This document shows, piece by piece, positions 4,680-24,695 of a stretch of DNA of 64,000 nucleotides. The DNA comes from Bacillus subtilis subsp. subtilis str. 168. Its GTDB lineage: Bacteria; Bacillota; Bacilli; Bacillales; Bacillaceae. The DNA is taken from assembly GCF_000009045.1 (NCBI RefSeq), contig NC_000964.3, positions 1,922,001 to 1,986,000 of the forward strand, in the 5' to 3' direction. The notes beneath the pieces were generated by a model. It was not told the DNA's origin, did not search any database, and saw only the letters and a program-made list of their open reading frames with translations. Position 1 is the stretch's first letter; the number at the start of each line of letters is the position of its first letter. The position numbers and the translations under genes were made by a program.

Positions 4680-7409
4680 ATGGCAAACGAGCAAAAAACT
4701 GCAGCAAAAGACGTTTTCCAAGCGAGAAAAACGTTTACTACAAATGGGAAAACATATCATTACTACTCTTTAAAAGCGTTAGAAGATTCAGGTATAGGAA
4801 AGGTTTCGAAGCTTCCTTATTCCATCAAAGTTCTTTTAGAATCAGTATTGCGTCAAGTTGACGGCTTCGTTATCAAAAAAGAACACGTGGAAAATTTGGC
4901 AAAATGGGGAACTGCCGAATTAAAGGATATCGACGTTCCGTTCAAACCGTCTCGTGTTATTTTACAAGACTTCACAGGGGTTCCGGCAGTAGTAGATCTG
5001 GCTTCACTGCGTAAAGCAATGGCAGCTGTCGGCGGAGATCCTGATAAAATCAACCCTGAAATTCCTGTTGATCTCGTTATCGATCACTCTGTACAGGTAG
5101 ATAAAGCGGGTACAGAAGATGCATTAGCAGTAAATATGGACTTGGAATTCGAAAGAAATGCAGAGCGCTACAAATTTTTAAGCTGGGCAAAGAAAGCGTT
5201 TAACAATTATCAGGCAGTACCGCCTGCAACAGGTATTGTGCACCAGGTCAACCTTGAGTTCTTGGCAAGTGTTGTCCATGCCATTGAAGAAGACGGCGAG
5301 CTTGTAACGTATCCTGATACGCTTGTCGGAACAGACTCACACACAACAATGATTAACGGTATCGGTGTTCTCGGCTGGGGTGTCGGTGGAATTGAAGCTG
5401 AAGCGGGAATGCTTGGACAGCCTTCTTACTTCCCAGTTCCAGAGGTAATCGGCGCGAAACTTGTCGGCAAGCTTCCAAACGGAACAACAGCTACTGACTT
5501 GGCGTTAAAAGTAACACAAGTGCTGCGTGAAAAAGGCGTTGTCGGTAAATTTGTTGAATTCTTCGGACCGGGAATTGCTGAACTGCCGCTTGCAGATCGC
5601 GCAACAATTGCGAATATGGCTCCGGAATACGGTGCTACATGCGGATTCTTCCCAGTAGATGAAGAAGCGCTTAACTACCTGCGCCTGACTGGCCGTGATC
5701 CTGAACATATTGATGTTGTTGAAGCATACTGCAGAAGCAATGGCTTGTTCTACACTCCAGATGCGGAAGACCCTCAATTTACTGATGTGGTTGAAATTGA
5801 CCTGTCTCAAATTGAAGCAAACTTATCGGGTCCAAAGCGTCCTCAGGATTTGATCCCGCTATCTGCTATGCAGGAAACGTTTAAAAAGCAATTAGTCAGC
5901 CCTGCAGGTAACCAAGGATTCGGTTTAAATGCTGAGGAAGAAAATAAAGAAATTAAGTTTAAACTCCTTAACGGCGAAGAAACAGTTATGAAAACGGGTG
6001 CGATCGCCATTGCTGCGATTACAAGCTGTACAAATACATCAAACCCATACGTGCTGATCGGCGCCGGACTGGTAGCGAAAAAAGCGGTTGAGTTAGGGCT
6101 TAAGGTGCCTAATTACGTGAAAACGTCACTTGCACCGGGTTCTAAAGTTGTTACAGGATATCTTGTGAATTCAGGCCTTCTTCCATACATGAAAGAGCTT
6201 GGCTTTAACCTCGTTGGGTACGGCTGTACAACATGTATCGGGAACTCAGGTCCGCTTTCACCGGAAATCGAAGAAGCGGTTGCGAAAAATGATCTTCTGA
6301 TTACGTCTGTCCTTTCCGGAAACCGTAACTTTGAAGGACGTATTCACCCGCTTGTTAAAGGCAACTATCTTGCTTCACCGCCGCTTGTTGTGGCATATGC
6401 GCTGGCTGGAACGGTAAACATTAACTTAAAAACCGATCCAATCGGTGTGGGCAAGGATGGTCAAAACGTATACTTTAATGATATTTGGCCGTCAATGGAC
6501 GAAATCAATGCACTTGTTAAGCAAACTGTTACGCCAGAGCTATTCCGCAAAGAGTATGAAACAGTATTTGATGACAACAAGCGCTGGAACGAAATTGAAA
6601 CAACAGATGAAGCTTTATATAAATGGGATAACGATTCAACTTACATCCAAAACCCACCATTCTTTGAAGAGATGTCTGTTGAGCCAGGCAAGGTTGAGCC
6701 ATTAAAAGGACTGCGTGTTGTCGGTAAATTCGGCGATTCAGTCACAACTGACCATATTTCTCCTGCGGGGGCAATCGGAAAAGATACGCCTGCCGGAAAG
6801 TATTTGCAAGAAAAAGGTGTTTCACCTCGTGACTTTAACTCCTACGGCTCCCGCCGTGGAAACCATGAAGTCATGATGAGAGGAACATTTGCCAACATTC
6901 GCATCAAAAACCAAATCGCACCGGGTACAGAAGGCGGATTTACGACGTACTGGCCGACTGGTGAAGTAACATCCATCTATGATGCATGCATGAAATACAA
7001 AGAAGATAAAACCGGTCTTGTCGTATTAGCAGGAAAAGACTATGGTATGGGATCTTCACGTGACTGGGCTGCAAAAGGAACAAACCTTCTCGGCATCAGA
7101 ACGGTCATTGCAGAGAGCTTCGAAAGAATTCACAGAAGCAATCTTGTATTCATGGGTGTGCTGCCGCTTCAGTTTAAACAAGGTGAAAATGCGGATACAC
7201 TCGGCTTAACGGGTAAAGAAGTCATCGAGGTAGATGTTGATGAAACAGTTCGTCCTCGTGACCTTGTGACTGTAAGAGCAATCAATGAAGACGGCAATGT
7301 AACAACTTTTGAAGCAGTCGTCCGCTTTGATAGTGAAGTTGAAATTGATTACTACCGCCATGGCGGCATCCTTCAAATGGTGCTTCGTGAAAAAATGAAG
7401 CAGTCCTGA
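4680..7409 (+). CDS. citB: Aconitate hydratase (AcnA/IRP type)
   Basis: 909 aa; [33 protein letters not shown] (Fe-S cysteines), [13 protein letters not shown]. Confidence 0.99.
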
Positions 7410-7420
7410 TGAATCAATAG

Positions 7421-7451
7421 GAAGAGAAGGCATTTCGCTTTCTCTTCTTTT
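7421..7451 (+). terminator. citB terminator
   Basis: GAAGAGAAGGC...GCTTTCTCTTC followed by a T-tract. Confidence 0.8.
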
Positions 7452-7480
7452 TATGACACAATGTGCTGCGGAGGTGGCAT

Positions 7481-7993
7481 ATGCTGAAAAAATGGCTCGC
7501 AGGGATCCTGCTTATCATGCTAGTCGGTTATACGGGATGGAATTTATATCAAACATACAGCAAAAAAGAAGTCGGAATTCAAGAGGGGCAACAAGCACCT
7601 GATTTTTCTTTGAAAACGCTATCAGGAGAGAAAAGCTCTTTACAGGATGCAAAAGGCAAAAAAGTGCTGCTCAATTTTTGGGCAACTTGGTGTAAGCCGT
7701 GCCGTCAGGAAATGCCTGCGATGGAAAAGCTGCAAAAAGAGTACGCCGACAAACTTGCGGTTGTTGCGGTAAATTTCACTTCAGCTGAGAAAAGTGAGAA
7801 ACAGGTCCGAGCGTTTGCTGATACTTATGACTTAACGTTCCCCATTCTGATTGATAAAAAAGGGATCAATGCTGACTATAACGTGATGTCATATCCAACG
7901 ACATATATCTTAGATGAAAAAGGTGTTATCCAAGACATACATGTTGGCACCATGACAAAAAAAGAAATGGAACAAAAACTGGATCTTGATTAG
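7481..7993 (+). CDS. yneN: Membrane-anchored thioredoxin-like (TlpA/ResA family) protein YneN, 170 aa
   Basis: N-terminal anchor; LLNFWATWCKPC CxxC motif; cis-Pro region YPTTY; SD GGAGGT before ATG 7481. Confidence 0.92.
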   Translation: MLKKWLAGILLIMLVGYTGWNLYQTYSKKEVGIQEGQQAPDFSLKTLSGEKSSLQDAKGKKVLLNFWATWCKPCRQEMPAMEKLQKEYADKLAVVAVNFTSAEKSEKQVRAFADTYDLTFPILIDKKGINADYNVMSYPTTYILDEKGVIQDIHVGTMTKKEMEQKLDLD

Positions 7994-8019
7994 ATTCAGT
8001 TTTTTTTATACTCAAATAT

Positions 8020-8049
8020 GCTTACAAGTTTTCAGAATTGGAAAAAATA
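8020..8049 (+). promoter_or_regulatory. Putative sigmaF (forespore) promoter of ynzL
   Basis: GCTTA-15 bp-GGAAAAAATA fits the sigmaF consensus GyWTA-15-GGnrAnAnTw. Confidence 0.6.
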
Positions 8050-8073
8050 AAAGAATATGCGGAGGTGAGAAGC

Positions 8074-8199
8074 GTGAAGAAGATGAGAAAACGTTCTTTT
8101 CATGAGCTCGTCATGGAAAACAAAAAAGAGCTGATGACCAATACAGAGTATTTAAATCAGCTTGAGGAAAAGCTTGAACAGCGATTTAAGCAAAAATAA
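8074..8199 (+). CDS. ynzL: Small basic protein, FbpB-like (41 aa, GTG start; not in ORF track)
   Basis: MKKMRKRSFHELVMENKKELMTNTEYLNQLEEKLEQRFKQK; SD GGAGGTG 6 nt upstream; SFxELVxENKxEL pattern recalled for the FbpB family. Confidence 0.8.
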   Translation: MKKMRKRSFHELVMENKKELMTNTEYLNQLEEKLEQRFKQK

Positions 8200-8263
8200 C
8201 CTTTAATTTGTATTCATGTTTACCCCTCCTTTTGAGAAACCTATCTGTTGAGGAGGGATAAAC

Positions 8264-8410
8264 ATGGGAAACAACAAGAAAAACGGTCAGCCTCAATATG
8301 CTCCAAGCCACTTGGGTACAAAGCCTGTAAAATATAAAGCCAATAAAGGGGAAAAAATGCATGATACTTCAGGACAGCGGCCGATTATCATGCAGACAAA
8401 AGGCGAGTAG
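8264..8410 (+). CDS. sspN: Small acid-soluble spore protein SspN (48 aa; not in ORF track)
   Basis: MGNNKKNGQPQYAPSHLGTKPVKYKANKGEKMHDTSGQRPIIMQTKGE; SD GAGGAGGG. Confidence 0.93.
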   Translation: MGNNKKNGQPQYAPSHLGTKPVKYKANKGEKMHDTSGQRPIIMQTKGE

Positions 8411-8446
8411 CGAAAATTCGAGTTTATTTCTAGGAGGTACATCCGA

Positions 8447-8698
8447 ATGACAAAGAACCAAAATCAATATCAGCAGCCTAATCCTGATGATCGTTCTGAC
8501 AATGTGGAAAAATTGCAGGATATGGTTCAAAATACAATTGAAAATATAGAAGAAGCAGAAGCATCAATGGAGTTTGCTTCAGGAGAAGATAAACAGCGTA
8601 TCAAAGAAAAAAATGCAAGGCGCGAACAGAGCATTGAAGCGTTTCGTAATGAAATACAGGACGAATCTGCAGCGAGACAAAACGGATACCGTTCTTAA
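8447..8698 (+). CDS. tlp: Small spore protein Tlp
   Basis: 83 aa; PDDRSDNVEKLQDMVQNT...KNARREQSIEAFRNEIQDE; SD GGAGG. Confidence 0.95.
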   Translation: MTKNQNQYQQPNPDDRSDNVEKLQDMVQNTIENIEEAEASMEFASGEDKQRIKEKNARREQSIEAFRNEIQDESAARQNGYRS

Positions 8699-8722
8699 AA
8701 AACCAGGGAAACCTGGTTTTTT
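8697..8722 (+). terminator. sspN-tlp terminator
   Basis: AAAAAACCAGG-gaaa-CCTGGTTTTTT. Confidence 0.88.
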
Positions 8723-8782
8723 TCTTTCTGATTTGATTATGGTAAAATGGGGCTAAATTGACGTTAAGGGAGCAGAGTAATC

Positions 8783-9199
8783 TTGCATGTATCAAAAAAA
8801 GAAATAGAAGTGCGTTATGCAGAAACAGATCAAATGGGGATTGTCTATCACGCAAATTATCTTGTGTGGATGGAGGTCGGCAGAACGGCCTTGATTAAGG
8901 ACTTAGGCTTTTTATATAGTGATATGGAAAAAAAAGGCGTTCTGTCCCCAGTCGTTGATATCAATATTTCCTATAAAAAGCCGCTTCATTACGGAGAAAC
9001 CGCGGTTGTACATACATGGATAGAGGACTATAACGGATTTAAAACCGTCTATGGTTACCACATTTATAATCCGGCCGGTGAGCTTTCCATCAAAGCCACC
9101 TCATCTCATATTTGTGTGGATAAAGAAAGCTTTAAGCCAATTCAATTCCGCAAAGCTTTTCCTGATTGGCACACAGCATATGAAAAGGCCAAAAAATAG
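8783..9199 (+). CDS. yneP: Acyl-CoA thioesterase (YbgC/4HBT family) YneP
   Basis: VRYAETDQMGIVYHANYLVWMEVGR signature; TTG start. Confidence 0.92.
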   Translation: MHVSKKEIEVRYAETDQMGIVYHANYLVWMEVGRTALIKDLGFLYSDMEKKGVLSPVVDINISYKKPLHYGETAVVHTWIEDYNGFKTVYGYHIYNPAGELSIKATSSHICVDKESFKPIQFRKAFPDWHTAYEKAKK

Positions 9200-9214
9200 G
9201 GAAGTGAACGGGAT

Positions 9215-9514
9215 ATGGCGTTTGGTGTGAAACGGGAGGAACTTAACCGGTGGAAACAAGCAGTGAAAAGAGGAGAAATCGCATTTTTAACACATTACTG
9301 GCTGGATGACCGATTTCCAGAAGCAAAGACCGTGACAAAAGCCGGCTGTGCAGACATTGATAAGCTGGTTCAGTGGGGAGCGGCGTACGGGTTAAAAAAA
9401 GAATGGATCCATAAGAAAAGTGAATTTCCCCACTTTGATCTGCTGGGGGAAACACAAAAATATATTTTGGAACAAGAAAACCTAACCGATCATCTTATAC
9501 GATTTCATTTGTAA
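9215..9514 (+). CDS. yneQ: Conserved protein YneQ
   Basis: 99 aa; LTHYWLDDRFP, FPHFDLLG; directly follows yneP. Confidence 0.85.
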   Translation: MAFGVKREELNRWKQAVKRGEIAFLTHYWLDDRFPEAKTVTKAGCADIDKLVQWGAAYGLKKEWIHKKSEFPHFDLLGETQKYILEQENLTDHLIRFHL

Positions 9515-9547
9515 AAAAAGAACGCACATGAAGTGCGTTCTTTTTTA
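9514..9547. terminator. Bidirectional terminator yneQ/yneR
   Basis: AAAAAAGAACGCAC-atgaa-GTGCGTTCTTTTTT. Confidence 0.9.
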
Positions 9548-9832
9548 TTGGTATTCAAAAACCGGTTCATCAGCGTCTTCTGAATAGCTGACGAGAAGGT
9601 CGTGGTTATCAAAGTACCATAAATCACTTTCTTCAATAAAGAAGGTAATGCCATCAGCTTCTGCAGTGACTCCAGCCTCTTGTGGGGCATCTTTCGCTAC
9701 ACCGAGAGAAAAACCCTTTTGAACGTTGCTGCAGCCTCCATAGCGGACGAAAAAGCGAACCTGGTCTCCGCTTTCCAAATCGAGTTCTTCTTTATACCAG
9801 TTCAATGCGTCTTCGTTAATTGTCATATTCAT
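9545..9832 (-). CDS. yneR: HesB/IscA-like protein YneR
   Basis: 95 aa; VRFFVRYGGCS..QKGFSLGV. Confidence 0.88.
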   Translation of the reverse strand: MNMTINEDALNWYKEELDLESGDQVRFFVRYGGCSNVQKGFSLGVAKDAPQEAGVTAEADGITFFIEESDLWYFDNHDLLVSYSEDADEPVFEYQ

Positions 9833-9919
9833 AACAGAACACCCCTTTGTTCTTCATTTGAATTTTCTCTATTATAAACGTATTAGGCTATTCTGTGTCA
9901 AAAGAGAAGTTTTTTAAGC

Positions 9920-10501
9920 TTATAACCATTTTACTTTAGGTTCTGTTTTATTGATAATTCGTTTAATGTTCGCTCGGTGTCTGTATATCACAAAAATAGT
10001 GAGCAGGGTAACGACAATCAATAAATACGTATCATGGACAAAGAAACTATATATAACAGTATAGATCCCTGTTAACATCGATGAGAGAGAAACAAATTTA
10101 GTCAAGTATAAAAAGATGAAGAATACCGCAACCATCGTGATAAATAACAGGGGTGCGTAAAATAGCAAAACGCCTCCTGATGTCGCCACGGCTTTACCGC
10201 CTTTAAATTTGGCGAAGATGGGAAACACGTGGCCTAAAACCGCAAAGACTCCTGCAAGAAGCGGGTGAATATCAACATGCATGAGAAAAGGCAATGCAGT
10301 TGCCAGTGTCCCTTTCAAAATATCTCCGGCTATGACGACCGAACCAGCTTTTACACCCAATGTACGGAATGCATTGGTAGCGCCTAAGTTGCCGCTTCCG
10401 TGCTCCCGAATATCAATTCCTTTGGCAAGCTTGCCCACAATTAAGCCAGATGGAATGCTGCCTATCAAGTAGGCCAAAATAATCAATAAAGCAATTAACA
10501 T
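9920..10501 (-). CDS. plsY: Glycerol-3-phosphate acyltransferase PlsY (YneS)
   Basis: [50 protein letters not shown] motifs. Confidence 0.98.
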
Positions 10502-10670
10502 CTACATTTCTCCTTTTTCAAATTCCCTTCTTTTTATTTTAACATGAGATGTCATGATCTGATGATAAGTTTTTTTGTAAAGTTTGCTTACAAATCAAAT
10601 CAAACATGCATCATATTTTGATTTCTCCTGTTTTGATCGTGTAAAATAAGTGAAAAAGGAGTGACACACG

Positions 10671-11078
10671 ATGCAAAACCCTTCTAAAGCGGAAATTAAA
10701 GAGATTCTTCAAAGAAGCAAACGTATAGCGGTAGTAGGGCTTTCAGACCGTCCGGATAGAACGTCACATATGGTTTCAAAAGCAATGCAGGACGCGGGTT
10801 ATGAAATTATCCCTGTGAACCCTACAATTGATGAGGCGCTAGGTGTCAAAGCCGTTTCATCTTTAAAAGAGATAGACGGTCCGATTGACATCGTAAATGT
10901 ATTCCGGCGCTCAGAACAGCTTCCTGGAGTGGCGGAAGAGTTTTTAGAGACAGATGCGCCAGTATTTTGGGCACAGCAAGGGCTAGTTAATGAGGAAGCA
11001 TACCAGATGCTAAAAGAAAAAGGCAGAACGGTTATCATGGATCTGTGCATAAAAGTGGCACACGCTGTAACAAAATAG
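10671..11078 (+). CDS. yneT: CoA-binding protein YneT
   Basis: IAVVGLSDRPDRTS, IPVNP, DIVNVFRRSE, FWAQQG. Confidence 0.93.
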   Translation: MQNPSKAEIKEILQRSKRIAVVGLSDRPDRTSHMVSKAMQDAGYEIIPVNPTIDEALGVKAVSSLKEIDGPIDIVNVFRRSEQLPGVAEEFLETDAPVFWAQQGLVNEEAYQMLKEKGRTVIMDLCIKVAHAVTK

Positions 11079-11225
11079 GTGCAGAACTGCAAAAATCCTT
11101 GTAAATTCAAGGATTTTTGCTTTTTAATTTTAAGATATTGTTTGCGTATTACGGTGAAACAGATACAATAAAGCTTGAACAGCTTTTTTTGAATACCTTG
11201 TCCAGCTGGGTTTCGGCCGTTCGAT

Positions 11226-11254
11226 TTGCGAAGGTCTGCTGCTTTATATATAAT
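11226..11254 (+). promoter_or_regulatory. sigmaA promoter P1 upstream of parE
   Basis: TTGCGA-17-TATAAT. Confidence 0.7.
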
Positions 11255-11257
11255 AAA

Positions 11258-11271
11258 CAAACATACGTTCT
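11258..11271. promoter_or_regulatory. LexA (DinR) SOS box overlapping the P1 start site of parEC
   Basis: CAAACATACGTTCT versus consensus CGAACRNRYGTTYC. Confidence 0.7.
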
Positions 11272-11330
11272 CATAGTGTAAAAACAGCACTAGCCGATGT
11301 TTTGAGAAGAACTGATTCGTTAGCTCTATG

Positions 11331-11358
11331 TTGCGATTGCAAACATATTGGTTATAAT
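11331..11358 (+). promoter_or_regulatory. Possible second sigmaA promoter P2 upstream of parE
   Basis: TTGCGA-16-TATAAT. Confidence 0.5.
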
Positions 11359-11476
11359 GAGGAGTCCAAGGCAGTACTGGCTCGAGGCGAGGTTTATAAA
11401 AAATATCTTATATACAAATGATGTGTAACACTGAAAAGAGAAAGACAATGTTAGTTTTTGAAAGGGGTTTGTACGT

Positions 11477-13444
11477 TTGGCTAGAAAACAGCAATTTGAT
11501 TACAACGAAGATGCCATACAGGTGCTCGAAGGCCTTGAGGCTGTCAGGAAAAGGCCGGGTATGTATATTGGCTCTACTGACGCGCGGGGTTTGCACCACT
11601 TGGTTTATGAAATTGTAGATAACTCTGTCGACGAGGTGCTTGCCGGCCATGGAGATCACATAATCGTCAAAATACATAAAGACAATAGTATTTCTGTACA
11701 GGATAGAGGCCGCGGCATGCCGACCGGAATGCATAAGCTCGGCAAACCAACCCCTGAAGTGATTTTAACGGTGCTTCATGCCGGAGGGAAATTCGGCCAA
11801 GGCGGCTATAAGACAAGCGGCGGGCTCCACGGAGTTGGTGCATCAGTCGTGAATGCTTTATCTGAATGGCTGACGGTTACCATTGAGCGGGACGGTTTTG
11901 TCTATCAGCAGCGATTTGAAAATGGAGGAAAACCGGTTACATCTCTCGAAAAGATCGGCAAAACAAAAAAGACGGGAACTCTTACACACTTTAAGCCAGA
12001 TCCAACGATGTTCAGCACAACCACTTATAATTTTGAAACGCTCTCTGAGCGCTTAAGAGAGTCTGCGTTTTTGTTAAAAGGACTGAAAATTGAGCTGATT
12101 GATGAACGCAATGACCAGCGTGAGGTCTTTTATTATGAAAACGGCATAGAAGCGTTTGTTGCTTACTTAAATGAAGAAAAAGACGTCTTGTCTGAAGTGG
12201 TCTCGTTTGAGGGTGAGCATCATTCTATAGAAGTGGACTTTGCGTTCCAGTTTAACGATGGTTATTCTGAAAATATTTTGTCGTTTGTCAACAATGTCAG
12301 AACAAAAGACGGCGGGACGCATGAGTCAGGTGCAAAAACTGCGATGACGCGTGCTTTTAATGAATATGCGCGAAAAGTGGCTTTGCTGAAAGAAAAGGAT
12401 AAGAACCTTGAAGGCACCGATATAAGGGAAGGGCTTTCAGCCATTATTTCTGTCCGCATTCCTGAGGAGCTTCTTCAATTTGAGGGACAAACAAAAGGAA
12501 AGCTCGGTACCAGTGAAGCAAGATCAGCGGTGGATGCGATTGTTTCAGAGCAGCTTGCTTACTTTTTAGAGGAAAATCGGGACACCGCAACGCTTCTTGT
12601 CAAAAAAGCAATCAAGGCGAGCCAGGCGCGCGAAGCGGCACGCAAAGCCCGTGAAGAAGCAAGAAGCGGCAAAAAACGAAAAAAATCAGAAGCGACTTTA
12701 AGCGGAAAGCTGACGCCTGCGGGTTCAAGAAACCCGGCAAAAAATGAATTGTATCTCGTTGAGGGAGATTCAGCAGGCGGGTCAGCCAAGCAGGGACGAG
12801 ACCGCAGATTCCAGGCGGTTCTGCCTTTACGCGGTAAAGTCATTAATACAGAAAAAGCTAAGCTTGCTGATATCTTTAAAAATGAAGAGATCAATACGAT
12901 CATTCATGCGATCGGCGGGGGAGTCGGGGCAGATTTCTCAATCGATGACATCAACTACGACAAAATCATCATTATGACCGATGCCGATACTGACGGCGCC
13001 CATATTCAAGTGCTGCTTCTTACCTTTTTCTATCGCTATATGAAACCGCTCATTGAGCATGGCAAGGTGTTCATTGCGCTGCCACCTTTATATAAGGTCA
13101 GTAAAGGAAGCGGGAAAAAGGAAATCATTGAATATGCATGGTCTGATGAAGAGATGGGGGATGTCCTGAAAAAAGTCGGCAAAGGCTATACCATTCAACG
13201 ATATAAGGGTCTTGGAGAGATGAACGCAGACCAGCTGTGGGAAACGACGATGAATCCGGAGTCCCGCACACTTGTTAGGGTCAAAATTGACGATGCGGCA
13301 CGTGTAGAGAGACGTGTGACGACGTTAATGGGAGACAAAGTAGAGCCGCGCAGAAAGTGGATTGAGAAAAACGTCGCTTTCGGCTTAGATGAAGAAAGCA
13401 ATATTTTAGAAAATGAAAACTTATCGGTCGCTGAGGAGGTTTAA
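11477..13444 (+). CDS. parE: DNA topoisomerase IV subunit B
   Basis: 655 aa, TTG start; GLEAVRKRPGMYIGS, LVEGDSAGGS, LPLRGK, MTDADTDG, RYKGLGEM. Confidence 0.99.
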   Translation: MARKQQFDYNEDAIQVLEGLEAVRKRPGMYIGSTDARGLHHLVYEIVDNSVDEVLAGHGDHIIVKIHKDNSISVQDRGRGMPTGMHKLGKPTPEVILTVLHAGGKFGQGGYKTSGGLHGVGASVVNALSEWLTVTIERDGFVYQQRFENGGKPVTSLEKIGKTKKTGTLTHFKPDPTMFSTTTYNFETLSERLRESAFLLKGLKIELIDERNDQREVFYYENGIEAFVAYLNEEKDVLSEVVSFEGEHHSIEVDFAFQFNDGYSENILSFVNNVRTKDGGTHESGAKTAMTRAFNEYARKVALLKEKDKNLEGTDIREGLSAIISVRIPEELLQFEGQTKGKLGTSEARSAVDAIVSEQLAYFLEENRDTATLLVKKAIKASQAREAARKAREEARSGKKRKKSEATLSGKLTPAGSRNPAKNELYLVEGDSAGGSAKQGRDRRFQAVLPLRGKVINTEKAKLADIFKNEEINTIIHAIGGGVGADFSIDDINYDKIIIMTDADTDGAHIQVLLLTFFYRYMKPLIEHGKVFIALPPLYKVSKGSGKKEIIEYAWSDEEMGDVLKKVGKGYTIQRYKGLGEMNADQLWETTMNPESRTLVRVKIDDAARVERRVTTLMGDKVEPRRKWIEKNVAFGLDEESNILENENLSVAEEV

Positions 13445-18565: not shown

Positions 18566-18624
18566 GAGTTCGTGCTCATAAGAAGTGTAGAGCCAAAATG
18601 ATGCGAAGGAGGAAAAGATCAGAT

Positions 18625-20124
18625 ATGAAACGGTCAATCTCTATTTTTATTACGTGTTTATTGATTACGTTATTGACAATGGGCGGCATGATAGCTTCGC
18701 CGGCATCAGCAGCAGGGACAAAAACGCCAGTAGCCAAGAATGGCCAGCTTAGCATAAAAGGTACACAGCTCGTTAACCGAGACGGTAAAGCGGTACAGCT
18801 GAAGGGGATCAGTTCACACGGATTGCAATGGTATGGAGAATATGTCAATAAAGACAGCTTAAAATGGCTGAGAGATGATTGGGGTATCACCGTTTTCCGT
18901 GCAGCGATGTATACGGCAGATGGCGGTTATATTGACAACCCGTCCGTGAAAAATAAAGTAAAAGAAGCGGTTGAAGCGGCAAAAGAGCTTGGGATATATG
19001 TCATCATTGACTGGCATATCTTAAATGACGGTAATCCAAACCAAAATAAAGAGAAGGCAAAAGAATTCTTCAAGGAAATGTCAAGCCTTTACGGAAACAC
19101 GCCAAACGTCATTTATGAAATTGCAAACGAACCAAACGGTGATGTGAACTGGAAGCGTGATATTAAACCATATGCGGAAGAAGTGATTTCAGTTATCCGC
19201 AAAAATGATCCAGACAACATCATCATTGTCGGAACCGGTACATGGAGCCAGGATGTGAATGATGCTGCCGATGACCAGCTAAAAGATGCAAACGTTATGT
19301 ACGCACTTCATTTTTATGCCGGCACACACGGCCAATTTTTACGGGATAAAGCAAACTATGCACTCAGCAAAGGAGCACCTATTTTTGTGACAGAGTGGGG
19401 AACAAGCGACGCGTCTGGCAATGGCGGTGTATTCCTTGATCAATCGAGGGAATGGCTGAAATATCTCGACAGCAAGACCATTAGCTGGGTGAACTGGAAT
19501 CTTTCTGATAAGCAGGAATCATCCTCAGCTTTAAAGCCGGGGGCATCTAAAACAGGCGGCTGGCGGTTGTCAGATTTATCTGCTTCAGGAACATTCGTTA
19601 GAGAAAACATTCTCGGCACCAAAGATTCGACGAAGGACATTCCTGAAACGCCATCAAAAGATAAACCCACACAGGAAAATGGTATTTCTGTACAGTACAG
19701 AGCAGGGGATGGGAGTATGAACAGCAACCAAATCCGTCCGCAGCTTCAAATAAAAAATAACGGCAATACCACGGTTGATTTAAAAGATGTCACTGCCCGT
19801 TACTGGTATAAAGCGAAAAACAAAGGCCAAAACTTTGACTGTGACTACGCGCAGATTGGATGCGGCAATGTGACACACAAGTTTGTGACGTTGCATAAAC
19901 CAAAGCAAGGTGCAGATACCTATCTGGAACTTGGATTTAAAAACGGAACGTTGGCACCGGGAGCAAGCACAGGGAATATTCAGCTCCGTCTTCACAATGA
20001 TGACTGGAGCAATTATGCACAAAGCGGCGATTATTCCTTTTTCAAATCAAATACGTTTAAAACAACGAAAAAAATCACATTATATGATCAAGGAAAACTG
20101 ATTTGGGGAACAGAACCAAATTAG
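18625..20124 (+). CDS. eglS: Endo-1,4-beta-glucanase (GH5 + CBM3) EglS/BglC, 499 aa
   Basis: Signal peptide MKRSISIF; GH5 IYEIANEP and FVTEWG catalytic glutamates; C-terminal CBM3; SD AAGGAGG before ATG 18625. Confidence 0.98.
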
Positions 20125-20713: not shown

Positions 20714-21982
20714 TTAACGATTTACAACAAATGTTGTCACGCTTTGAGCTGGAAGATGAGCCCAAAAATGATTGCCTGATACAGTGAGATTCGTTCCAGG
20801 TTGTAGATTGCTGCTGCTGCTCGTGATCCATCTAGATACGTTTGAAGCAGATCCATTCTGCAAAACAAAGTTTTGGTTGACTCCTGTGTTGCTTTTATTG
20901 ATGGCAACAATAACGACCTTGTTGTCACCTTTATAGGCTGACACGTAAACGTTCGCATTAGGGTTTTTCGTTGCATCAATCCTTACATAGCCGGGACGCA
21001 CAAACTTTGAGAAATGAGCCATATTGTAGCCGCGTTTGCTGATCGTACCATCTTCTTTCATAGGTCCATATGATCTTCGGATGTACCACCATACATAAGC
21101 TTGAAAGTCCCCCTCTACCATCGCATTGTGAATATGCTGTGAAACATCCAATGCCTCAGGCCATCGATCCGCCGAGTTGGTATCACTGTTTGGATAGTAT
21201 ACTTCCGTCATCCAAAGGTCCTTCCCCGCTCCTTTTTGTTTGAAAAGAGGATAAGGGAATTGGCTGACCTGGGTGCCGTACAGGTGAGTTCCGAGAATAT
21301 CCATATTGGCAAGAGCCTGCGGATCGTTCAAGATCGGGTCCGACAAATTCTTCAAGTATTGAAATGACTCAGGCGCAATGACGCGGGCATTGATCGAGCC
21401 GGCGTTTTCTCTCATAAAGCGAAGTATTTCTTGCGGCGTCCACCACGTCCACTCGTGAGCGTAATCAGGCTCGTTTTGGACCGAAATCGCGTAAAGATTC
21501 ACACCATTATTCTTCATGAAGGTAACAAAATCGTTAAGATGCTGCGCGTATGCTGCGTACTTGTTGTATTTCAGCCGTTTAGCCGATGTGTCACCATTCC
21601 GATTAAAGGTCTCAACCATATCACTTGGAGGATTCCAAGGAGAAGCAAAAACGATTGCTCCGTGTTTGACCGCACTCTTTGCAGTCTCCACCTCTTTATA
21701 CCAATTATTTCGATTTTCATCTACATGAATTCTTAAGATTGAAAATCCTAACTGGTTCTGTCCATTGCCAAAAGCAGTTTCTCTTTGAGCTGCTGTAAGA
21801 TCCCCAGCCCAAGCCGGATGATTCATCCCTCCAAAACCGCGAATCACTTGTTTCTCTGCAGATACATTAACTGTTACATCACTTGCTGCCAAAACTTCAG
21901 TAGCGCCTGGCCCTAACATGACTGACAGCATAGTGAAACATACTAATAGTACACAAATTGTTTTTTTTATGCGTGGAATCAT
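20714..21982 (-). CDS. xynC: Glucuronoxylanase XynC (GH30_8)
   Basis: 422 aa, signal peptide; AISVQNEPDY and KDLWMTEV catalytic motifs. Confidence 0.97.
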   Translation of the reverse strand: MIPRIKKTICVLLVCFTMLSVMLGPGATEVLAASDVTVNVSAEKQVIRGFGGMNHPAWAGDLTAAQRETAFGNGQNQLGFSILRIHVDENRNNWYKEVETAKSAVKHGAIVFASPWNPPSDMVETFNRNGDTSAKRLKYNKYAAYAQHLNDFVTFMKNNGVNLYAISVQNEPDYAHEWTWWTPQEILRFMRENAGSINARVIAPESFQYLKNLSDPILNDPQALANMDILGTHLYGTQVSQFPYPLFKQKGAGKDLWMTEVYYPNSDTNSADRWPEALDVSQHIHNAMVEGDFQAYVWWYIRRSYGPMKEDGTISKRGYNMAHFSKFVRPGYVRIDATKNPNANVYVSAYKGDNKVVIVAINKSNTGVNQNFVLQNGSASNVSRWITSSSSNLQPGTNLTVSGNHFWAHLPAQSVTTFVVNR

Positions 21983-22112
21983 TTATTCCTCTCCTTCGTC
22001 ATGTGTCTTTTACGGTATTAAAAAATCTGCATGGCATATCCATAATGGCGGGCTGTTCCGGTGCTGGCCCGTACTTCACCCGCCTCGTTTTTAAGCGGTC
22101 CCATTACGAGTA

Positions 22113-23654
22113 CTATCTTTGCGTAAACTGCCAGTAATCAAAATTAAACAAGTTTCCTGTACCTGTTCCGGTAAATACAAAGAATACTTTGTGCACACCG
22201 GTTGCCCCGCTTACCGCAGTTTCTATTTCCCTCCACGTTTGCGCTCCGCCTGTTGAAGGCACATTCAGAGTTCCAACAAGCTTACCGTCTGCACTGTCGA
22301 GGCGCACTTCTATTTTCCCGCCTAAAGTGGATGCTACATTTGCTTTAAATGACCTGGCACCGCCCGCTCCGAAGTCTGCATTTCCTACAGCAATCCAGTC
22401 TCCATTTTGAATGCTTGTTACATGCTGATTATTTACTGGCCCGCCGGGTGCTGTGGACTTCTCTGTCAAAATGCGTCCATTCCAAGCAAACGTTTCAGCT
22501 TCTACCCGGTTATATGGGTTTAAATTGGAAATTTGTGTTACACCTGCATAATTTGCCGCTACCTCTTGAATAGATCCATCTGCATTATGCACCAGCTTAT
22601 TAATATGGGGAGAGCGGTATCCTTTGCCGGCCCCGAACAGAGCGGAACTGACAGTTTGCGCATGGTACACCACATACCACTCGTTTTTAAAATTGAAAAC
22701 AGCATGATGGTTGTTTCCGCCACCTCCGAAAAATGCACCCGGATTTTTCAGGAAGTGCCCTCTATATGTAAAGGGACCCATGGGACTTGAACTGGTCATG
22801 TAGCCGATCTCACCCGGGGGTTTATCGGCCGGGTGCGTGCCGCCGAAATTGATGCAATAGGAGTAATAATATGTTCCGTTATACTTGTGCAATCCCGAAT
22901 CTTCAAACATGAAAGGCGCATCAATTGTAGATGCACTTCCAACAACACTCGTCATATCAGGCCCCAATTTTATGACTCTAGCCGTTTTAGGATTGGCCCA
23001 TTGTCCCTGCGTTGGATTTGAAACGCCAGGAACGCCTCCGCCGGCATACAGGTAACCGGTTCCGTCGTCATCTACAAATACTGCCGGATCAAAAAGCCAT
23101 ACAACACCAGACATTCCTGGCGTACTTGGCGTTACGAGCGGTTTTCCGATTGGGTCGGTCCATGGACCAATCGGGCTGTCTGCGGTGAGAACCCCGATAC
23201 CTCCGCCGCTGTTTGCGAAATAAAGGAAGAATTTATCCTTGCCATTAATTTTTTTAACTGCGATTGACGGTGCCCATGACGCACCTGCCCATTTTGCAAT
23301 TCCACGGCCTCCATTAGCTCCATTGGCACCTGCTACCGGAATGGCTCCGTGGTCTGTCCAGTTCACCATATCCGCTGAAGATATGACGAATACTCTATTC
23401 AAATTGGCAAATGAATTATCTTTAATTGTTCCGTTGCTATTATATTCATAGTCATCACTTGACATATAGATGTAGACTCTTCCGTTATAGGTCAGCGCAA
23501 CCGGATCCGCTCCCAAATGATGGTCGATAAGCGGATTTGAATTCCCTATATGTTTTGCAATTGTAGTACTAGTGGCAGCATACGCAGACTTCCCAGATAA
23601 GCAGCTCAATAATAAAACTAGAATCCATAAACATACGCTACACTTTTTCCTCAT
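22113..23654 (-). CDS. xynD: Arabinoxylan arabinofuranohydrolase XynD (GH43 + CBM6)
   Basis: ADPVAL, SWAPS, LFDPAVFVDDDG, MFED; C-terminal CBM6 (RVEAET, NFDYWQF); start ATG 23654 or GTG 23657. Confidence 0.97.
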   Translation of the reverse strand: MRKKCSVCLWILVLLLSCLSGKSAYAATSTTIAKHIGNSNPLIDHHLGADPVALTYNGRVYIYMSSDDYEYNSNGTIKDNSFANLNRVFVISSADMVNWTDHGAIPVAGANGANGGRGIAKWAGASWAPSIAVKKINGKDKFFLYFANSGGGIGVLTADSPIGPWTDPIGKPLVTPSTPGMSGVVWLFDPAVFVDDDGTGYLYAGGGVPGVSNPTQGQWANPKTARVIKLGPDMTSVVGSASTIDAPFMFEDSGLHKYNGTYYYSYCINFGGTHPADKPPGEIGYMTSSSPMGPFTYRGHFLKNPGAFFGGGGNNHHAVFNFKNEWYVVYHAQTVSSALFGAGKGYRSPHINKLVHNADGSIQEVAANYAGVTQISNLNPYNRVEAETFAWNGRILTEKSTAPGGPVNNQHVTSIQNGDWIAVGNADFGAGGARSFKANVASTLGGKIEVRLDSADGKLVGTLNVPSTGGAQTWREIETAVSGATGVHKVFFVFTGTGTGNLFNFDYWQFTQR

Positions 23655-23741
23655 CACTTCACATCCTCCTTTTTCCTTAAAATGGGGGATTTTCTTTTGG
23701 AATTTGATAACAACAGGTCACGAAGATTGCACGCATAAAGT

Positions 23742-23910
23742 AGCCGGAAGCTGTTTAGCAATGTTCCCAGTTGTTCTGAAAGCTCATCTTCATGTGTCTC
23801 CATTCTCTCTTTTCTTCGAGGAGATCGCACCACTCCTTCAAAATTGTTCAAAAAAACTTCCCCATTCCTAGCGACCATTGTCCAGAAAATAAAAAGACAG
23901 GATTGTTCAT
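23742..23910 (-). pseudogene. Eroded remnant of an iturin-family malonyl-CoA transacylase gene (ituD/fenF/bmyD type)
   Basis: MNNPVFLFSGQWSLGMGKFF* (23910-23848) resembles the recalled N-terminus MNNLAFLFPGQGSQFVGMGK; KERMETHEDELSEQ (from 23812) and AKQLPA (23759-23742) resemble the recalled C-terminus KERMERHENELSEQELEH...CEAKQLPAW. Confidence 0.75.
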
Positions 23911-23973
23911 GGCCTCCCACTAATCACATTGAACGGAGATTACATCATTATCCAAGATATCCCTTTATCTAAC

Positions 23974-24002
23974 ATCCTACATCATTAAAAAAATTGTGTA
24001 TA
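23974..24002 (-). promoter_or_regulatory. Putative relic lipopeptide-operon promoter now pointing at xynD-xynC
   Basis: TATACA-17-TAGGAT on the minus strand, the hexamer pair I recall for the itu/bmy promoter. Confidence 0.55.
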
Positions 24003-24177
24003 GAAACTTTTGGAGGAGTTAGTGTTCGATTCTACAAAGGAACTGGATACATTTATTCATTGATAAGATGGGGCTAACACTCCGTTTATATTTGTATGTT
24101 TTCAGACACAAAAAACAGCCGTTCAATGCGGCTGTTTTTTTCAAGAGTATAAGACTATTGAGCGGTATACCCGCTTT

Positions 24178-24209
24178 TTCATGTTTTGTTCATATTTTAT
24201 TAATTGTTT
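24178..24209 (+). promoter_or_regulatory. Tandem 11-bp-phased direct repeats, OmpR-family response regulator site (YclJ-type) upstream of yngA
   Basis: TTCATGTTTT-g-TTCATATTTT-a-TTAATTGTTT; overlaps the -35 of TTGTTT-16-TATAGT (24204-24231). Confidence 0.65.
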
Positions 24210-24290
24210 ATTCAACACTGTCCGCTATAGTAATCCATATCAACAAATATGACTGCCACTCGCATCTTTTATGAAGGGAGGTTCGTTACG

Positions 24291-24695
24291 CTGAAAGAAA
24301 AAATAAAGACATTAGGCCGTTTTTGCACCGTAGGCGTCGGCAATACGCTGATAGATTTTGGTGTCTTCTTTCTTCTTACCGCTTGTCATGTCTCTTATCT
24401 GCCGGCGCAGATCTGCTCCTATACTGCAGGTATCGTCAACAGCTATGTGTGGAACCGGAATTGGACGTTTTGTGTGAAACGTAAGGCTGACGGGAAAGAG
24501 ATCGTGCGTTTTCTCATGATTAATATTGCCGCGTCAGGGATCACCTTTTTGCTGCTTTATTTGTTTCAAAATTGCGGCTGCTCGCTTTTGGTGAGTAAGC
24601 TCGCCGCCACTATCGGCGGAATGATGATGAATTTTATCGGAAACCGAATCTGGGTATTTGGAGATTCGCTGAAAAACATACAGGATCAGGAGTGA
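24291..24695 (+). CDS. yngA: GtrA-family undecaprenyl-phosphate-sugar flippase YngA
   Basis: RFCTVGVGNTLIDF...SYVWNRNWTF GtrA pattern; ATG at 24249 has no SD, whereas SD AAGGGAGG sits 9 nt before in-frame CTG 24291 (start uncertain). Confidence 0.85.
   Translation: MKEKIKTLGRFCTVGVGNTLIDFGVFFLLTACHVSYLPAQICSYTAGIVNSYVWNRNWTFCVKRKADGKEIVRFLMINIAASGITFLLLYLFQNCGCSLLVSKLAATIGGMMMNFIGNRIWVFGDSLKNIQDQE

Follow-up and report, generated by a model that had tools for sequence, protein, structure and literature searches.

Genes and features of the yngA-xynD spacer

The window, the whole 64,000-nucleotide stretch of the Bacillus subtilis chromosome that we analyzed, carries eglS, xynC, xynD, yngA, yngB, yngC and nrnB in that order together with further genes, and has plipastatin synthetase open reading frames about 14 kb further along (38198-63870). 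The spacer between yngA and xynD is 591 bp long and contains, upstream of xynD and on the xynD strand, fragments of a gene of the ituD/bmyD (bamD)/fenF family. These are the first genes of the operons for iturin A, bacillomycin D and mycosubtilin. The features of the interval are listed in Table 1.

Table 1. Features between xynD and yngA in window coordinates; ituD positions are nucleotides of the intact gene, and L-numbers are the comparison loci named in the text.
Feature	Coordinates	Strand	Correspondence and remarks
xynD (GH43 + CBM6 arabinoxylan arabinofuranohydrolase)	22113..23657	-	PF04616, PF03422; right flank
88-aa mechanical ORF	23654..23920	-	Relic pieces run together with the xynD leader; not a gene
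xynD own upstream region	23658..23730	-	In every relative, with or without the operon
Large-deletion junction (putative)	23731..23741	-	ituD nt 1177 to ~88 bp past the ituC stop; 11 unassignable bases
ituD nt 1159-1176 remnant (AKQLPA)	23742..23759	-	Follows a 29-bp deletion
ituD nt ~1075-1129 remnant (KERMETHEDELSEQ..EH)	23760..23812	-	DNA match to L086; start placed at ~1069-1075
Internal ituD deletion junction	23813..23818	-	~nt 125-1068, ~945 bp gone including the GHSLG active-site region
ituD nt 1-124 remnant	23819..23910	-	Deletions of 6, 1, 21 and ~4 bp; frameshift; TGA at codon 21
ituD upstream region with itu/bmy promoter block and ribosome-binding site	23911..24081	-	L086 9826-10000
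Junction/filler	24082..24097	-	Replaces ~347 bp of the yxjF-ituD spacer
yxjF last 20 nt and intrinsic terminator	24098..24174	-	L084 11442-11520, 88.6% over 79 bp
Junction J1	24174..24175		Adjacent bases are L084 1183 and 11442; 10,258 bp of the B. velezensis arrangement absent
yngA upstream spacer common to all relatives	24175..24248		yngA-bioW spacer in B. velezensis
yngA (GtrA-family membrane protein)	24249..24695	+	PF04138; left flank of the scar

Comparison loci came from two kinds of search. Loci anchored on xynD, with 10-kb flanks that reach ituC and not ituD, include B. mojavensis ATCC 51516 (L001), a record titled B. atrophaeus NRS 213 (L003), B. halotolerans ATCC 25096 (L004) and B. 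velezensis (L005); B. subtilis and several sister species are absent from the xynD-anchored matches listed. The bmyD/ituD locus of B. velezensis (L084) was reached by walking from YngA via ScoB, and an intact BmyD/ItuD protein then served as the query for relatives and their loci. These comprise B. vallismortis (L086, the main intact reference, with ituD at 10001-11203), B. tequilensis (L088), cabrialesii-like genomes (L093/L094), B. inaquosorum (L095) and a record labelled B. subtilis (L085) whose flanks are only ~91% identical to the window. Around ituD, yngB and nrnB, the B. inaquosorum assembly (GCA_019104205.1) is called as many short fragments, which points to errors in the assembly more than to genuine pseudogenes.

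Fragments of ituD upstream of xynD

Three minus-strand pieces resembling ItuD had been predicted at 23742-23910 from the sequence, and all are present there, in three different frames. MNNPVFLFSGQWSLGMGKFF, followed by a stop, reads from an ATG at 23910 to a TGA at 23850-23848 (codon 21); FEGVV and GAIS lie in two frames within 23819-23840; KERMETHEDELSEQ and AKQLPA lie at 23771-23812 and 23742-23759. DNA alignment with L086 places the pieces in strict collinear order along the intact gene. Window 24081-23839 matches L086 9826-10079 (205/255 identities, E = 2e-59), covering 175 bp of upstream sequence and ituD nt 1-79, and it is followed by nt 108-124 (23835-23819, 16/17), nt 1075-1116 (23812-23771, 39/42, E = 4e-12) and nt 1159-1176 (23759-23742, 18/18). 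Both ends of ituD are thus represented, and the E-values of the promoter and pieces together are 2e-59, 4e-12, 2e-3 and 0.29. Taken alone, the 169 bp of 23742-23910 yield a best collinear chain against ituD of 184.5 bits, about 8 standard deviations above 300 shuffled sequences (mean 57.9, sd 15.6, maximum 102.3).

The start piece and a degenerate FEG..AIS had been described as separate elements. Both are there, but by eye the 5′ remnant is one essentially contiguous piece, nt 1-124, interrupted by four deletions. The 6-bp deletion takes out Gln-Phe, the 1-bp deletion shifts the frame and brings in the TGA at codon 21, and the 21-bp deletion is flanked by two TTTG repeats. Where intact proteins have MNNLAFLFPGQGSQFVGMGK, the remnant encodes MNNPVFLFSGQWSLGMGKFF and a stop, and the N-terminal FPGQGSQ motif has degenerated to FSGQWS with the two-codon deletion behind it.

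In the 3′ remnant, KERMETHEDELSEQ stands against KERMERHEDELSEQ of the intact protein P0069, and CTGGGAACATT at 23770-23760 derives from GAACTCGAACATT; the B. subtilis strain at locus L091 still has GAACAAGAACTGGGAACATT and, by retaining AAG, keeps the nt 1075-1129 piece contiguous. The nt 1159-1176 piece is identical at 18/18 positions to L084, L085, L086 and L093. The identity of the 3′ piece is 93% to B. vallismortis and the cabrialesii-like genes, 86% to B. velezensis and 79-81% to fenF. Overall, similarity to the relic falls in the order vallismortis/cabrialesii-like, tequilensis, velezensis, fenF, and the fenF genes of B. spizizenii and B. atrophaeus, which lie at other loci, are its most distant relatives.

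In all, the relic is homologous to nt 1-124, ~1069-1129 and 1159-1176 of ituD plus ~170 bp of promoter region, and about 200 of 1203 coding nucleotides survive (124 nt of the 5′ end and ~80 nt of the 3′ end). Unlike intact ituD/bmyD/fenF, it has a broken frame and has lost the core of the gene and the three synthetase genes. Intact relatives have 399-400 aa, whereas the relic, with its stop at codon 21 and its three frames, has no uninterrupted ORF of ~400 aa. Intact ItuD of L086 carries Acyl_transf_1 (PF00698, 123.5 bits, residues 6-287), and GHSLGE is visible in the intact gene; this domain and the GHSLG active-site serine are missing from the relic, which is predicted to encode no transacylase and to make no lipopeptide.

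The 88-aa ORF that overlaps the relic is, as had been suspected, chimeric: its frame differs from that of ituD in the 5′ piece, coincides with it in the nt 1075-1116 piece, and then continues into the xynD leader. It has no match to a Pfam family, gene calling passes over it in the three B. subtilis loci displayed (representing 24 contigs), and it is broken differently in L091. A 410-aa X-padded read-through of the pieces, searched against 5.8 billion proteins, gave 17 candidates, none with E <= 10, because under the design of this search the query shares too few exact 5-mers with intact proteins.

Extent of the scar and its junctions

The original prediction confined the relic to ~170 bp. The pieces are real, but the alignments indicate that the relic fills the whole spacer at 23731-24174, including the ituD promoter and a scar of yxjF and the bio genes. 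Upstream of the ituD start, a block from TTCTATACACA to TATAATCATGCTAGGATGTTAGATAAAGGGATAT is conserved in all intact operons and in all relics and is their best-kept stretch. In the window it reads TTTAAT for TATAAT and has lost one C before TAGGAT. L086 9479-9825 has no counterpart in the window.

Beyond the filler lies the end of yxjF, whose stop codon is at L084 11461, with a terminator hairpin at 24110-24140 (-15.7 kcal/mol, z = -3.9 by folding). This clear minus-strand hairpin (12 bp with A-U pairs counted, then a run of T) was missed by a terminator scan of 23600-24300 and confirmed by the folding. On the other side of J1, window 24258-24176 matches L084 1101-1183 (92.8% over 83 bp). 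In B. velezensis the gap at J1 (L084 1184-11441) holds bioWAFDBI, yxjC, scoA, scoB and most of yxjF. An Rfam search returned only a chance match to the rimP leader, at 21.9 bits below the threshold (gathering score 47).

On the xynD side, the synthetase genes ituA, ituB and ituC are absent, and only 11 bp separate ituD nt 1176 from DNA that follows ituC in other genomes. Homology to this post-ituC DNA resumes at window 23730, equivalent to L005 9932 and L004 9927. In these loci the ituC-type ORFs end at 9830 (L005) and 9828 (L004), so that resumption falls ~88-100 bp past the stop, beyond the ituC terminator. A large deletion here would have taken the end of ituD, ituA, ituB, ituC and the ituC terminator, ~36 kb in all. 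Both this size and the exact right junction are pieced together from loci of different strains, the size from ituA of 3982 aa, ituC of 2619 aa and an ituB that we take to be about 5360 aa long. The breakpoints of the two large junctions are placed only to ~5-10 bp, and with comparators 10-20% diverged microhomology is not reliably readable. Together with the biotin/ketone-body block, the iturin operon would bring the DNA once held at this locus and since deleted to ~46 kb.

Intact operons at the same locus

The itu/bmy operon had been expected directly upstream of xynD in the same orientation, and this arrangement is found in B. velezensis (L005) and B. halotolerans (L004), where ituC-type ORFs of 2619 and 2597 aa, co-oriented with xynD, end ~150-320 bp before it. 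At the other end, ituD follows yxjF in B. velezensis L084, and ituD-ituA lies beside yngA in L085, L086, L088, L093 and L095. The relic occupies the same position, between yngA (or yxjF) and xynD, and has the same orientation, so that the flanking synteny of the iturin-family locus is found on both sides in the window. Steinke et al. 2021 (PMC8546965) used yxjF and xynD as borders of the iturin cluster. In L004 a ~170-bp tandem duplication (9927-10405) comprises the xynD upstream region and first codons, which moves the xynD start to 10154 from ~10001.

In the subtilis-clade genomes that keep the operon (L085, L086, L088, L093/L094, L095), ituD is ~890 bp from yngA, its divergent neighbor. Within these ~890 bp are remnants of the start of bioW and of the end of yxjF, all with endpoints nested within L084 1612 and 11315, which fits one old bio-yxj deletion in the clade ancestor followed by erosion. 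On this gene order, the B. velezensis arrangement, with the bio operon and yxjC-scoAB-yxjF between yngA and bmyD, looks like the older one. In B. subtilis 168 the bio and yxj genes are presumably at other loci.

The mycosubtilin-type operon lies away from this locus. Strain W23 had been proposed as a comparator at xynD, but in its species, B. spizizenii, the myc/fenF operon lies after dacC and the comparison does not apply; in B. atrophaeus (L099, L100) a complete fenF/myc operon also lies at a different locus. This placement away from xynD agrees with Dunlap et al. 2019 (PMC6693446).

Other scar alleles and strain variation

Scars of a different make-up are found in other species. In B. mojavensis (L001) yngA adjoins xynD, and the promoter is preserved up to the ATG, followed by ituD nt ~469-689 (92-93% identical to subtilis-clade genes); this allele also keeps ~165 nt of bioW and ~30 bp more post-ituC DNA than the window. 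The B. atrophaeus NRS 213 record (L003) has ituD nt 1-28 and ~496-629 between yngA and xynD, a relic of subtilis-clade type within a ~4-kb tract (8893-13082). The window shares no ituD junction with L001 or L003, so at least some of the decay was independent. B. mojavensis, which lacks the operon, and B. halotolerans, which keeps it, are probably sister species.

Within B. subtilis, for which a survey of strains had originally been suggested, the loci compared show the scar to be polymorphic. Two assemblies (L090, L092) are 100% identical to the window over 6.4 kb. L091 (98.1% overall identity) shares its large junctions with the window, from which it differs by indels of 9, 3 and 1 bp and by having CGA, not TGA, at codon 21. 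The scar is therefore older than the split of these strains and is under no coding constraint, and by its sequence it appears to be drifting neutrally. The collection indexes the exact YngA sequence of the window in 2612 blocks; in the three loci displayed, representing 24 contigs, the layout is that of the window and no gene is called in the spacer. Among the loci compared, the B. subtilis scar was met only in B. subtilis genomes.

Divergence of the flanking genes

Four-fold-site divergence between the window and B. mojavensis forms a valley centered on the scar, within window 20714-24695: eglS 0.48, xynC 0.31, xynD 0.16, yngA 0.155, yngB 0.26, yngC 0.30, and 0.45-0.54 for nrnB, yngE, yngG and yngH. 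Against L003 the values run 0.29, 0.15, 0.19 and then 0.49-0.66, with xynD and yngA at 0.15-0.19; by nucleotide identity, the L003 tract from within yngA to xynC is 88-93% identical to the window and neighboring genes 75-81%. For xynD of B. halotolerans, which lies beside an intact operon, the divergence is 0.167. The relic differs from intact ituD by ~10-15% substitutions, of the same order as the flank values of 0.15-0.19.

Low divergence at yngA and xynD points to exchange of this tract between species by recombination, and on these values the tract would have a common ancestor much younger than that of its surroundings. The naturally competent lifestyle of these Bacillus species fits such exchange.

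In a record titled B. glycinifermentans GO-13 (L002), only xynD-xynC is homologous (5883-8951, 90.6% nucleotide identity), and the upstream genes are unrelated. The left edge of this shared block is the ~75-bp upstream region that xynD possesses on its own. Homology starts at window 23731, ~10 bp inside the apparent start of the post-ituC match of the window. The block looks like a cassette transferred horizontally into a licheniformis-clade genome.

Origin of the scar

We consider it very probable that 23731-24174 is a non-functional deletion scar of a locus with the order yngA / (bioWAFDBI, yxjC, scoA, scoB, yxjF) / ituD-ituA-ituB-ituC / xynD. The ordered pieces from both ends of ituD, with their frameshift, stop and core gap, are explained only by deletion from an intact gene. 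Homology, the sequence of the pieces, the positions of the junctions, synteny and strain polymorphism are observed directly. From them we infer that the direction of change was loss, and not gain, that the events took place in the order below, and that the loss befell B. subtilis ancestors and not a donor.

In this history, an old deletion would have removed the ~10-kb bio-yxj block from the whole subtilis clade, its edges having since eroded. The lineage leading to the B. subtilis allele may later have undergone a single large deletion, from ituD nt 1176 to ~88 bp after ituC, with the loss of ~36 kb of NRPS/PKS genes and the ituC terminator. Further deletions would have taken the ituD core (~945 bp, active site included) and ~347 bp of upstream spacer, and small slippage-type deletions of 29, 21, 6, 4, 3 and 1 bp would have followed. 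The itu promoter and ribosome-binding site, 124 nt of the ituD 5′ end and ~80 nt of the 3′ end would be the survivors. The operon-bearing yngA-itu-xynD tract may have spread by homologous recombination and later been deleted in several recipients.

That the lineage once carried the operon, as the original prediction held, is likely on homology and synteny; it stops short of proof, as the divergence valley is also what import of an already deleted allele could leave. On that account B. subtilis never had the operon and received the scar by transformation and homologous recombination. It would accommodate the drop in divergence from B. mojavensis from 0.45-0.54 to 0.16 at xynD and yngA, the similar drop for L003, the contrast in L003 between the tract and its neighbors, and the block of xynD-xynC alone in L002. 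We nevertheless regard import as rather unlikely. The xynD of B. halotolerans, beside an intact operon, is equally close, and a tract bearing the operon could just as well have been the one exchanged; the relic alleles of the three species differ internally, which argues against the spread of a single scar allele to all three; and the restriction of the B. subtilis scar to B. subtilis genomes among the loci compared also speaks against it.

It is less plausible still that the spacer is a functional element, with the retained itu promoter and ribosome-binding site transcribing through the scar into xynD-xynC or a small peptide being made. It is true that no part of the relic alleles is conserved better than the promoter block, that the ituC terminator, which would insulate xynD, has been lost, and that the scan finds no terminator-like site on the minus strand between the promoter and xynD. 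Against this, a consensus scan of 23600-24300 finds no sigma-70-type promoter, the window has a mutated TATAAT box and lacks one base ahead of TAGGAT, xynD keeps its own ~75-bp upstream region in every genome including L002, and the ORFs differ between B. subtilis strains.

We see very little room for the view that the sequence upstream of xynD is ancestral and served as the target into which the itu operon was inserted by horizontal transfer. The tract clearly moves between species, and Dunlap et al. 2019 (PMC6693446) describe a phylogeny of the iturin cluster that is incongruent with the core genome and a proposal that the cluster was introduced several times. Insertion, however, leaves unexplained the ordered 5′ and 3′ coding fragments with a frameshift, a stop and microhomology-flanked gaps. 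A 400-aa Acyl_transf_1 gene cannot arise around such crumbs by insertion, and other species keep other internal ituD crumbs.

Chance resemblance of short peptides, for which one could cite pieces of only 6-20 aa and a phmmer search of the very short 20-aa N-terminal query that found no match among PDB sequences, is ruled out by the DNA E-value of 2e-59, a chain ~8 standard deviations above shuffles and synteny on both sides.

We tentatively raise a broader possibility: that yngA-[itu]-xynD is a presence/absence cassette which naturally competent Bacillus species exchange via its flanking genes by homologous recombination, with gain of the 37-kb operon and its loss (through decay into a scar allele or replacement by one) crossing species and the divergence valley as its footprint, and that the retained DegU-type itu promoter may in addition feed xynD-xynC.

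Relation to known lipopeptide clusters

Part of this picture has precedent. In 2001 Tsuge, Akiyama and Shoda reportedly found that DNA bordering the itu operon corresponds to that beside xynD in strain 168, where the itu promoter has also been conserved upstream of this gene; they are said to have read this conservation as a sign of horizontal transfer. The promoter homology at xynD was thus probably already known. What the present analysis adds, as far as can be told, is the set of coding crumbs with the map of their junctions, the scar of the bio genes and yxjF, the differing scar alleles of other species, and the valley in divergence. Searches of the accessible literature returned no description of the relic and nothing on the regulation of xynD.

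A pseudogene scar of a lost biosynthetic cluster is of an ordinary kind. Other decayed clusters of the B. subtilis complex include the sfp frameshift of strain 168, a clade-wide ppsE frameshift and incomplete plipastatin/fengycin clusters, and the scar resembles the lineage-specific, clade-conserved inactivation of lipopeptides described by Steinke et al. 2021 (PMC8546965). Those cases are point frameshifts or partial clusters still recognized by genome mining; in contrast, ~99% of the itu cluster is gone here and the remnant is neither annotated nor called as a gene.

The main antifungals made by Bacillus strains sold for biocontrol are the iturin-type lipopeptides, whose patchy distribution still lacks an explanation; multiple introductions and birth-and-death were left open as causes by Dunlap et al. 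2019 (PMC6693446). The scars of B. subtilis, B. mojavensis and the B. atrophaeus record are direct sequence evidence for cluster loss, and the divergence valley at the flanks is evidence for exchange of the iturin tract, which together make the question answerable by a pan-genome survey of one 600-bp spacer. The scar also offers an integration site that is natural and evidently tolerated and that retains remnants of a native promoter.

Elsewhere in the window, eglS (18598-20124) differs from B. velezensis L005 by only 0.14 at four-fold sites (92% nucleotide identity), compared with 0.32-0.33 for the adjacent xynC and xynD, which suggests a separate exchange with B. velezensis.
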